Sequence record: NC_036595.1
Length of the DNA: 18,222 nucleotides
Reading direction: 5' to 3' (one strand)
Of the stretch, positions 6,302 to 13,703 are shown piece by piece; position 1 is the stretch's first letter, and the number at the start of each line of letters is the position of its first letter. The notes beneath the pieces are model-generated. The model ran no database searches and was not told the origin of the DNA. It worked only from the letters and a program-made list of their open reading frames with translations. A program made the translations under genes and the position numbers.

Positions 6302-6355
6302 TTAGTATAAATAAATGGGGGCGGGGTATATACCCCTATATGGAAATACATACTT

Positions 6356-7634: not shown

Positions 7635-7682
7635 CACCTTTTTAAAGTAAATCTTTTTCTAACCCCTCTTTTCCCTGTTTTG
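7635..7682 (+). terminator. T-rich terminator region
   Basis: CACCTTTTTAAAG...TCTTTTTCT...CTTTTCCCTGTTTT after the 7616 stop. Confidence 0.55.
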
Positions 7683-8275: not shown

Positions 8276-8712
8276 TCGTGGCTAGGGCCTGCGTTGTAAA
8301 CGTGAACAACTGGATGCCCGCTTTTTTAGAGAAGCTTAGGACAGACGGGAGAATAAAGAAGTGGGAGTGGGCGGGCGGCTCGACGATTTGCTTTGAGTTT
8401 GACGGCCATATACAAATAGACGTTACAGATATGCATGATGCGGTGCCAGACTACGTGCTACGCAACAACGCTAACTACGAGACCCTTAAAGCCATATTTA
8501 AGCAGTATGTCGTGCTTAGCATAATAAACACGCTGCGTGGCGGCGTGGTTCACGGCTTCACCGACACATGGATAGAGCTGGAGAGCACCGAGAAAACCGA
8601 GGTAGTCTGTTTTAGAGTAACTAGGCAGGAGAAGGAGAGGCTGGAGAAAGAAGCAGAGGAGAGGGGCGTCAGCCTGAGCGACTACATACGCTCCCGCGTC
8701 CTCACCGATTAA
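8272..8712 (+). CDS. Two-domain protein with a C-terminal ribbon-helix-helix (CopG/MobC-like) DNA-binding domain
   Basis: C-terminal KTEVVCFRVTRQEKERLEKEAEERGVSLSDYIRSRVL fits the RHH pattern (alternating strand, helix A, G-x-S-x-S-x-x-I-R helix B). Confidence 0.8.
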   Translation: MIVARACVVNVNNWMPAFLEKLRTDGRIKKWEWAGGSTICFEFDGHIQIDVTDMHDAVPDYVLRNNANYETLKAIFKQYVVLSIINTLRGGVVHGFTDTWIELESTEKTEVVCFRVTRQEKERLEKEAEERGVSLSDYIRSRVLTD

Positions 8713-8796
8713 TTTAAGTGAAAGTCGGAGAGTAAGCTCAGTCCGCTCCCTCAAGGCACATCCCATGAACAATTTTTAAAGTAAGAAATAAATAGG

Positions 8797-8825
8797 GTTA
8801 TGTGGTCATAAAGTTATGTGGTCAT
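8797..8825. repeat. 13-bp perfect direct repeat GTTATGTGGTCAT x2
   Basis: Copies at 8797-8809 and 8813-8825, next to an AT-rich tract at 8771-8796. Confidence 0.85.
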
Positions 8826-8901
8826 GTGGGCGTGAGAGTATGCTCGGCGAGAACATGCCTCAAACTCCCACTCCCTATACTTCTTCTAACTCAAATAATG
8901 A

Positions 8902-8945
8902 CTCTGTTAACACTTTGTTAACACTGTTAACAATTGTTAACAGAG
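8902..8945. repeat. Four phased palindromic TGTTAACA repeats bounded by an 11-bp inverted repeat; candidate origin or operator array
   Basis: TGTTAACA at 8905, 8916, 8925, 8935; CTCTGTTAACA (8902-8912) is the reverse complement of TGTTAACAGAG (8935-8945). Confidence 0.85.
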
Positions 8946-8956
8946 ATTGTGAGAGA

Positions 8957-9358
8957 ATGGTTAGAGAGAGTAGAGTTGTAGGTTTTAGAGTTAGTAGGGC
9001 GGCGTGGCTGCTTTATAATGAGGCTTTGAGCTACAGCGATAAAGAGGTGCTTAAGTATGTTGTCGAGGGTTTGATACTGGCTCTGGCTAGGGAGAGGATG
9101 GGTGGTCTCCCCTGCGGCGATATTTTGGATAAAAGGCTCTCCGCCTCAGCCATTAGGTTTACTGGCCAGGGCTTTGTTAACTTCAATGTGTCTGTCAACG
9201 TGAACGAGAATAAAAACGAGAATAGGGTGAATGTCGATCTGGCCGCTCTGGCCGAGCTTGTCGACAGGCTGTACCACATTATGAAGAGTAACCCAAGCAC
9301 GCCGCCGCTCCAGCTCAAGCTGGTAGAGGATATACGCAGGCATTTGAAGACGAACTAG
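8957..9358 (+). CDS. Hypothetical protein with a possible N-terminal RHH-like DNA-binding region (start uncertain: 8816, 8855 or 8957)
   Basis: MVRESRVVGFRVSRAAWLLYNE resembles an RHH strand-helix. The upstream in-frame extension is low-complexity and coincides with the repeat array. Confidence 0.6.
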   Translation: MVRESRVVGFRVSRAAWLLYNEALSYSDKEVLKYVVEGLILALARERMGGLPCGDILDKRLSASAIRFTGQGFVNFNVSVNVNENKNENRVNVDLAALAELVDRLYHIMKSNPSTPPLQLKLVEDIRRHLKTN

Positions 9359-9360
9359 CG

Positions 9361-9400
9361 AAAGGTTTATTAGGACTGGGGGCCTATATGGATATATGGC
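9361..9400 (+). promoter_or_regulatory. BRE/TATA promoter sharing the core of the repeated promoter
   Basis: AAAGGTTTATTA is identical to 7723-7734; ATGGC lies 30 nt after the TTTATTA start, as RTGGC does in copies 1-3. Confidence 0.65.
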
Positions 9401-9654
9401 TCTGTGAGCGTGGGAGCATGGGCAGGATTCCCGTGAGGCCTGTACTCGAGGAGTCTTTTTGGAAGTGGGCTAAGAAAAAAGCCATCGACATAGATGCGGA
9501 CGCAAGCGACATAGTGGAGCTAGGTCTAGCCATGGTTTATGTGGTGACTGAGAGGCTTAGGCGGGTGCCGCCTGAGCTCGGCAGAGAGTTGAGGACGTTG
9601 GACCCGAAGTACGCGGAGCTCGTTAGCAAGCTCATAACAGAGGCCAGGGGGTGA
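9388..9654 (+). CDS. Probable ribbon-helix-helix DNA-binding protein (possible start 9418)
   Basis: RIPVRPVLEESFWKWAKKKAIDIDADASDIVELGL fits an RHH strand-helix-helix. Confidence 0.6.
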   Translation: MDIWLCERGSMGRIPVRPVLEESFWKWAKKKAIDIDADASDIVELGLAMVYVVTERLRRVPPELGRELRTLDPKYAELVSKLITEARG

Positions 9655-13512: not shown

Positions 13513-13703
13513 GGCTTGAGGTCCTGGTGCTGCAAAATCCTGACCATAAAACACTGCGTAGGCTGCTCAGGCGGCATAACGGCAGGATACTGGCTGTAGC
13601 CCTTGTCGTCGAGGTCGAGAGCAAAAAACAGGTTTCAGCTCTTGCGAGGCACTATAGGCTTAGGCCTCTCCCCGTCCCCGCCACCCTCTTTATCGAGCAC
13701 TAG
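13509..13703 (+). CDS. Small basic hypothetical protein (64 aa)
   Basis: Start reassigned to GTG 13509 (GTGA overlap with the integrase stop, GGGGG upstream); converges on the ATPase gene. Confidence 0.55.
   Translation: MRLEVLVLQNPDHKTLRRLLRRHNGRILAVALVVEVESKKQVSALARHYRLRPLPVPATLFIEH

Follow-up and report, generated by a model that had tools for sequence, protein, structure and literature searches.

The 18,222 nt of DNA analyzed here (the window) make up the entire circular genome of Aeropyrum globular virus 1 (AGV1; LC208019 / NC_036595), with 100% identity. Our subject is an array of four short palindromes at the 5' end of gp16, a gene that follows gp15 and precedes a small gene missing from RefSeq (Table 1). 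The 8-mer TGTTAACA occurs exactly four times in the genome, at 8905, 8916, 8925, and 8935, with a spacing of 11/9/10. All four copies fall inside 38 bp and none is found elsewhere in the 18,222 bp; shuffled sequences gave an expected count of 0.17, and 0/200 shuffles contained four copies. The hexamer GTTAAC has five copies in the AGV1 genome, all within gp16. An 11-nt inverted repeat, CTCTGTTAACA / TGTTAACAGAG, encloses the array, with 14-nt arms that are 93% complementary. An initial annotation of this DNA had pointed out the four phased palindromes, the 11-bp inverted repeat around them, a loose dyad formed by TCTAAC at 8885 and GTTAGA at 8960, and a fifth, partial site at 9175 (TGTTAACT). 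All of these features are present. It had interpreted the region as a replication origin or else as an autoregulatory operator array for the adjacent gene, taken to encode a ribbon-helix-helix (RHH)-like protein.

The preprint describing AGV1 reported RHH domains in ORF15 and ORF22 and makes no mention of the four-site repeats of the gp16 region (10.1101/2021.04.21.440749). It counts 34 ORFs, compared with 33 coding sequences in the RefSeq record (10.1101/2021.04.21.440749). A literature search for the 8-mer TGTTAACA returned only unrelated primer and construct papers.

Table 1. Coordinates of features in and around gp16 of AGV1, numbered along the window.
Feature	Positions	Strand	Remarks
Four-site array	8902..8945	none	Sites at 8905-8912, 8916-8923, 8925-8932, and 8935-8942; CTC...GAG brackets
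Fifth, partial site TGTTAACT	9175..9182	none	Encodes VN in the Asn-rich segment of gp16
gp16 as re-read (probable)	8840..9358	+	172 residues; ATG at 8840, preceded by GTGAGAG
Annotated gp16 start codon	8957..8959	+	RefSeq start, 133-residue form; Met40 in the re-reading
Predicted DNA-reading beta-strand RVVGFRVSR	8972..8998	+	Residues 45-53, from the dimer prediction
Tandem repeats GTTATGTGGTCAT	8797..8833	+	8797-8809, 8813-8825, and a partial third at 8822-8833
AAATAAATAGGG, likely TATA box	8786..8797	+	Second half of the AT-rich tract; recurs at 6309, intergenic
T-rich word TTTTTAAAGTAA, likely terminator	8773..8784	+	gp15 stop is 61 nt upstream; first half of the AT-rich tract
gp15 C-terminal RHH domain	8593..8712	+	Pfam NikA-like, E=4.5e-10; strand VVCFRVTR
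Winged-helix regulator gene remnant	8710..8757	-	~16 codons, 5' end; BLASTP to L006 gene, 16/38 identities, first residues only
Small downstream gene	9388..9654	+	88 residues; missing in RefSeq; 65% identity to L006 2100-2369, E=3e-41

The array lies within the reading frame of gp16

Exhaustive profile searching across 1.8 billion representative proteins gave 17 matches to gp16, and a word-indexed profile search gave 5. The matching proteins are 151-204 residues long, except for the truncated AGV1 gp16 of RefSeq (133 residues) and a 390-residue multi-stretch match. For comparison at the DNA level, we used 12 distant metagenomic homologs with 26-60% protein identity; the closest relative, locus L006, is 58% identical. 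Searches of IMG/VR, JGI metagenomes, and GTDB genomes with gp16 and with two-sequence and five-sequence alignments found no related loci, and tblastn against GenBank phage and archaeal-virus records returned AGV1 itself only. Scanning for any three phased GTTAAC hexamers produced at least 119 unrelated matches in IMG/VR and at least 120 in GTDB, mostly bacterial and uninformative for the gp16 family.

The gp16 frame is open from 8816, and the array sits within it, encoding SVNTLLTLLTIVNR, rather than 5' of the gene as annotated. The true start of gp16 is probably upstream of 8957 and most likely the ATG at 8840, which would put the RefSeq start 39 codons too far downstream; the ATGs at 8816 and 8855 are alternative candidates. 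L006 has CTA where AGV1 has the ATG at 8957, and its start ATG aligns with AGV1 8840 and follows the same GCGTGAGAG word. An ATG at the 8957 position is found in AGV1 only, with L256 having a TTG just 3' of its array. No ATG, GTG, or TTG lies between the array and the DNA-reading strand in 10/12 loci, so in these loci synthesis of the protein requires translation through the array. The N-terminal extension corresponding to AGV1 8903-8956 is present in all 15 aligned family members, and over this interval AGV1 and L006 differ at 10 positions, 7 of them silent.

As re-read, gp16 consists of an array-encoded N-terminal arm, Cys37, an RHH domain (~residues 44-87), an Asn-rich segment, and a C-terminal helical hairpin. 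Cys37 is nearly invariant in the family and is encoded upstream of the annotated start; initiation at 8957 might yield a short isoform that lacks it.

The array is conserved as a DNA word

Four GTnnAC hexamers with a spacing of 10-11 / 8-9 / 10-11 are present in 11 of the 12 homologous loci. The twelfth, L258, has a decayed array of two copies and a decayed third. The distance from start codon to array is 14-56 nt in the relatives and 65 nt in AGV1, and the RHH strand follows 9-12 codons after the array in the homologous loci. Across the 13 loci, array and gp16-like gene are strictly linked. The pyrimidine/purine switch described in the initial annotation holds in AGV1 at a local scale, where pyrimidine-rich left and purine-rich right flanks of ~50 nt each have purine fractions of 0.34 (8855-8904) and 0.69 (8943-9000), but not at genome scale, GC and purine skew keeping their sign across the array region. 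This contrast is absent from L006 and is thus not a conserved feature.

The hexamer is uniform across the copies of any one genome and varies between lineages. It is GTTAAC in seven loci (AGV1 and six others), GTATAC in three, of the GTTTAC/GTAAAC type in two (L255 has GTTTAC with one GTAAAC), and in L257 GTTGAC, with one copy as GTCAAC. Asymmetric hexamers (L255 and L257) are arranged as three direct copies and one inverted, the fourth being the reverse complement of the first.

The encoded peptide tracks the DNA word: VN and LLT correspond to two frames of GTTAAC, and VY and LYT to two frames of GTATAC. At third bases in the hexamers, codons for identical amino acids match in 85-100% of cases, compared with 30-48% elsewhere in the gene, in pairwise comparisons. 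For single pairs Fisher's test gave p values down to 0.002, though the pairs are not independent. The hexamers also avoid the frame in which they would encode a stop: 0/30 of the stop-capable hexamers (GTTAAC, GTTGAC) occupy it, as against 5/18 of the others (Fisher p=0.005). One of these five, GTTATC at 531-536 of L248, is the sole imperfect copy in a GTTAAC array, and a perfect GTTAAC at this site would read TAA.

These patterns argue that selection on the DNA word, and not on the peptide, keeps the array. The initial annotation had considered the case in which the 8855-8956 extension is conserved as protein while the DNA repeats are not. The extension indeed appears to be coding; the repeats, however, are conserved too, and more strictly than the peptide. 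Judged from sequence comparison, then, the array is a conserved, translated, lineage-specific four-site element in the 5' end of an RHH-like gene.

Additional copies of the hexamer occur outside the array. A copy of the own-lineage hexamer lies at +303 to +342 in L249, L250, and L255, and none is found there in L006. The fifth site of AGV1, TGTTAACT, may serve as an auxiliary site or may just result from Val-Asn codons. It falls in residues 112-133 of gp16 (9173-9238), which, with their counterparts in the homologs, form a conserved Asn-rich alternating segment (FNxNxN ... AEA ... xNxNx), and the Val-Asn codons of this segment create the extra lineage hexamers in AGV1, L249, L250, and L255. 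In L006, an extra GTTAAC at 1494 lies just 5' of a TATA-like box in an 86-bp divergent intergenic region and may be a promoter-proximal auxiliary site; its AGV1 counterpart is a degenerate look-alike only (8768-8779).

gp16 is predicted to be a ribbon-helix-helix protein

Structure prediction indicates that gp16 is an RHH-like protein of an undescribed family. An AlphaFold2 model of residues 40-90, made with a 14-row alignment, has a mean predicted local distance difference test score (pLDDT) of 91 and consists of an extended segment and helices 14-22 and 26-48; the full-length model has the same strand-helix-helix layout. Prediction of residues 34-112 as a homodimer gave a median score of 0.70 over three runs, compared with 0.00 for the best of three controls, with contact agreement of at least 94% and a partner pLDDT of at least 78. 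This mark was reached by 20/30 proteins solved as one-chain pairs and 1/23 solved as single chains, counts that hold only roughly here because an author-built alignment was used. The predicted contacts 48-48, 47-49, 46-50, and 45-51 are those of an antiparallel ribbon whose two-fold axis passes through Gly48, a position that would lie over the center of a palindromic site.

A VIA-align comparison of the domain with 48,161 PDB representative chains placed RHH proteins at ~14 of the top 50 positions, aligned over 42-48 of 51 residues with low Z-scores of 3.1-3.9. They include CopA_SO, YiiF, TacA, ParR, PutA, NikR, KacA, omega, and others, with unrelated helical proteins interleaved. Foldseek found no match with the gp16 domain, and with the full gp16 model both Foldseek and VIA-align found generic helical hairpins only. 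At the sequence level, Pfam RHH profiles matched neither gp16 nor its 14 homologs, and a PDB profile search with the gp16 family gave no match. In hhalign, comparison with gp15 aligned the strand alone (20 columns, probability 12%), and comparison with gp21, a bona fide CopG-like protein, gave no match. The nearest named protein-atlas clusters to gp16 are all RHH families (~0.80), which we take as a lead only.

Beyond the RHH core, Cys37 is accompanied by a second conserved cysteine, Cys92 in an LPCE motif, and both lie in the predicted dimer interface, making a disulfide or a metal/redox site possible. The C-terminal Asn is invariant in the family. The Asn-rich segment, modeled at low confidence, may mediate higher-order assembly. 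We also considered an analogy with the CdrL-CdrS system and dropped it: the CdrL_M profile was matched by 1/15 members (P0007), at 23.3 bits and below the cut-off of 27. CdrL is reported to be restricted to Halobacteria (PMC7439475).

Residue 48 changes together with the hexamer

The residue on the predicted two-fold axis follows the identity of the site. Residue 48 is Gly in 7/7 loci with GTTAAC and Cys or Ser in 6/6 others. Locus L257 (GTTGAC, Ser48, Lys50, VSFK) is nested in a GTTAAC clade with support values of 96/88 and 98/96, and therefore represents an independent switch of residue and word, bringing the number of switches to at least two. This link between residue 48 and the hexamer is our main argument that gp16 would read its own array.

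Predicted promoter and candidate second operator

The AT-rich tract at 8771-8796, proposed earlier as part of an origin, is indeed 85% A+T, and each of its halves has a counterpart at another gene boundary. The 12-mer TTTTTAAAGTAA has one other copy, at 7639 and 23 nt after the gp13 stop (0.04 expected); judging from its position, it likely ends transcription of the gp14-gp15 unit as an oligo-T terminator. AAATAAATRGGG is found both at 8786 and at 6309, and AAATAAATAGGG is likely the TATA box of a gp16 promoter, the homologous loci having AT-rich boxes at a like distance from their start codons (~-50 to -58). Because both halves recur at other gene boundaries, a terminator plus a TATA box fits the tract better than an unwinding element.

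The 13-bp direct repeat that the initial annotation listed next to the tract also exists, as two copies of GTTATGTGGTCAT followed by a partial third. These tandem repeats would cover the predicted transcription start, and we regard them as a candidate second operator. Repeats of other sequence with the same 16-bp period are found at the same place, -43/-27 from the start, in L248 and L255, and L250, L251, and L257 have three CTGAAC-like words in place of the tandem repeats.

The array as a candidate self-operator

With little more than even confidence, we read the array as a self-operator bound by four gp16 dimers. Array conservation, concerted change, frozen silent sites, an open frame, and a predicted RHH dimer were all obtained here, and from them we infer that gp16 itself binds the array and that repression is the outcome. 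The proposal that the sites are an operator array for the RHH-like gene thus gains from the retention of the array in 11/12 distant loci and from its co-variation with the predicted DNA-reading residue. The array itself lies inside the coding region, not upstream of the gene.

In the self-operator model, one RHH dimer would occupy each 8-bp palindrome, and with site centers about one helical turn apart the four dimers would be aligned along one face of the DNA. Measured from the TATA-like box (8786-8797), the array is 109-156 nt downstream; it would start ~85 nt after the predicted transcription start, where the bound complex could be an obstacle to RNA polymerase. Alternatively, the array-bound complex could nucleate spreading back to the promoter, with the second, tandem set of repeats over the start site. 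In either case gp16 would determine its own abundance and, probably, the expression level of the downstream genes. The uneven spacing can be understood if the array must be both bound and translated: 11/9/10 would average one helical turn while keeping every GTTAAC outside the TAA-reading frame.

Several points weigh against the self-operator. The RHH assignment is a prediction, with low fold Z-scores and no sequence match in Pfam or the PDB. The residue-48 rule is drawn from 13 loci with a minimum of two independent changes, and the deep tree is unresolved. Three direct sites combined with one inverted site are not predicted by any simple symmetric model. It would be unusual for an archaeal repressor to have its operator 85-125 nt past the start site. 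Finally, because the motif is found nowhere else in AGV1, gp16 as a regulator would control only its own transcription unit.

Alternative functions of the array

We considered whether the array could instead be a replication origin within the gene of its own origin-binding protein, with gp16 recruiting host replication factors. The model for such an arrangement is the lambda origin, in which four dyad-symmetric repeats lie inside gene O and the repeats and the DNA-binding part of the protein diverge together. Phased in-gene repeats of lineage-specific sequence with matching protein changes are thus traits of lambdoid origins, and a motif unique in the genome fits a single cis site. The lambda repeats differ in being 18-19 bp long with ~20-bp spacing and in having an AT-rich stretch in the same gene, and O is not an RHH protein; unlike in lambda, neither a skew signal nor an adjoining AT-rich stretch was found at the AGV1 array. 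The AT-rich tract is 109 nt upstream and is built of words reused at other gene boundaries, and in the relatives the array flanks are coding, G+C-rich in L006, L252, and L253, with no conserved AT-rich stretch adjoining. Searches with Pfam found no ATPase, helicase, primase, or HUH domain in gp16 and no recognizable replication gene, whether in AGV1 as a whole or next to the module in the other loci; the module resembles a divergent two-regulator switch. The lack of a recognizable initiator (Pfam), together with the lack of host-type origin boxes in AGV1 (10.1101/2021.04.21.440749), can also be counted in favor of an unconventional origin.

The AGV1 preprint put the origin between ORF34 and ORF1, with GC skew as the sole basis (10.1101/2021.04.21.440749). 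In our cumulative skew analysis, a check suggested with the initial annotation, the GC minimum is at ~801 and the maximum at 13,664, and the curve rises steadily through 8.7-9.0 kb with a positive slope on either side and no inflection. Cumulative purine skew likewise rises through this region, with extremes near 1-800 and 13,650. The extremes (about 1-800 and 13,664 for GC) coincide with switches in gene orientation; because skew in this 18-kb genome follows gene orientation, the test is weak either way. With no skew inflection, an AT-rich tract made of boundary words, and no accompanying replication gene, we set aside the earlier origin reading and regard an origin in gp16 as unlikely. If it were one, AGV1 and related crenarchaeal elements would replicate via a previously unknown RHH-type initiator.

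It is quite unlikely, in our estimate, that the array is an operator for a different protein, be it gp15, the small downstream protein, or a host protein. The gp15 strand VVCFRVTR does resemble the gp16 strand VVGFRVSR, and the module also encodes a protein of 73-89 residues and, in relatives, a winged-helix protein. Yet gp15 is missing from every related locus that retains the array, and its Cys at the axis position is linked in the gp16 family to motifs other than GTTAAC. AGV1 has a perfect array despite the loss of the winged-helix gene, and the array sequence follows residue 48 of the gp16-like protein.

Very unlikely, too, is a centromere-like partition site at which gp16, as an RHH centromere binder in the manner of ParG, ParR, or omega, would maintain the unintegrated viral episome as cells divide. 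RHH centromere binders use short, mixed-orientation repeat arrays, and the three-direct-plus-one-inverted order in L255 and L257 is like the arrays of 7-10-bp direct or inverted repeats bound by omega (pSM19035), ParG, and ParR; ParR and plasmid ParB RHH structures are also among the fold matches. Those arrays, however, lie upstream of promoters and come with partition NTPases, and no gene for a partition NTPase adjoins gp16 in AGV1 or any relative. The only P-loop protein, gp32, is encoded 5 kb away on the other strand. AGV1 has been described as an unintegrated, unstable episome (10.1101/2021.04.21.440749), which can be counted in favor, but it is also reported to be diluted as cells grow (10.1101/2021.04.21.440749), the opposite of active partition.

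We consider it highly improbable that the array acts as an RNA or single-stranded DNA hairpin, with sites 1-4 and 2-3 paired, controlling translation, mRNA stability, or a DNA transaction. The predicted hairpin has a free energy of -21.5 kcal/mol at 37 C, far below that of shuffled sequences, the outer flanks co-vary (CTC/GAG in AGV1, CCC/GGG in L006), and, in asymmetric motifs, copies 1 and 4 are reverse complements. Any palindrome array, however, folds on paper; at 90 C, a temperature within the host growth range, predicted free energies for all 12 loci lie between 0 and -2.2 kcal/mol, and in L255 the inner pair, sites 2 and 3, is mismatched at two central positions.

That the array is a mere peptide repeat or chance cluster, as translation of the region and the conserved look of its VN/LT pattern might suggest, is already contradicted by array conservation, concerted change, and frozen silent sites within the hexamers: copies in different reading frames encode different peptides (VN versus LLT), the peptide switches wholesale from VN/LT to VY/YT along with the DNA word, and chance would give 0.17 copies.

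Neighboring genes

The gp15 strand is nearly a copy of the gp16 strand: 24 nt of gp15 (8602-8625) are 79% identical to gp16 8975-8998, which suggests that the two domains share a recent origin and makes gp15 a possible competitor or partner of gp16 at related sites. The axis position of gp15 is occupied by Cys, which in the gp16 family is linked to GTATAC-type sites. Elsewhere in the genome, GTATATAC has four copies (5060, 6326, 6774, and 7695; 0.28 expected), of which those at 6326 and 7695 lie in promoter-like intergenic DNA upstream of early-looking cassettes. It is a possible gp15 target, which we offer as a lead only. AGV1 uses hexamer palindromes unevenly in general: TGTACA occurs 12 times against 3.4 expected from base composition and TATATA 14 times against 2.1, while CAGCTG, TCCGGA, TCGCGA, CGTACG, AGATCT, TGATCA, and AATATT have zero copies.

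A gene for a winged-helix/MarR-like protein of 83-92 residues lies divergent to the gp16 homolog in L006, L248, L250-L254, L256, and L257. AGV1 has only an antisense remnant of such a gene (8710-8757) and seems to have swapped it for the gp14-gp15 unit through recombination. On the other side, a gene for a 73-89-residue protein comes next after the gp16 homolog in most loci. The N-terminus of its AGV1 product looks strand-helix-helix-like.

Comparison with known regulators and implications

CopG/RepA of pMV158, Arc, Mnt, and MetJ bind as cooperative RHH dimers on successive turns and one face of the DNA, repressing their own operons. Like the CopG/RepA-type autorepressors, gp16 is predicted to be a small RHH dimer reading a short (pseudo)palindrome. 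The operators of these proteins overlap promoters and are non-coding, whereas the gp16 array is translated into the regulator. The gp16 family also differs from CopG-type proteins in its size of 160-200 residues, its conserved Cys pair, its Asn-rich segment, and its C-terminal helical hairpin.

Among archaeal viruses, the RHH proteins SvtR (SIRV1), AvtR (AFV6), and F55 (SSV1) bind imperfect inverted or tandem repeats and repress their own promoters, sometimes acting from distal, high-affinity sites ~80 nt away through spreading; F55 keeps the temperate virus SSV1 in the carrier state (PMC5569661). These three proteins bind within promoter regions, and we detected no sequence relationship between them and gp16. 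The review of archaeal viral regulators reports no four-copy phased array or in-gene location for SvtR, AvtR, or F55 (PMC5569661). More broadly, neither that review (PMC5569661) nor the AGV1 paper (10.1101/2021.04.21.440749) contains a comparable in-gene array.

For annotation, the gp16 start should probably be moved from 8957 to ~8840 and the conserved gene at 9388-9654 added to RefSeq. If gp16 is the binder, the array doubles as the N-terminal arm of the protein presumed to recognize it, a compact example of one sequence carrying two codes, with a spacing that seems adjusted to helical repeat and reading frame together. The gp16 family would also provide a natural specificity table, with four site variants paired with changes in the axis residue. 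In AGV1, a virus without known replication or lysogeny control, the gp16 module is among few candidate control elements, and in relatives this module takes the form of a divergent winged-helix/RHH gene pair.

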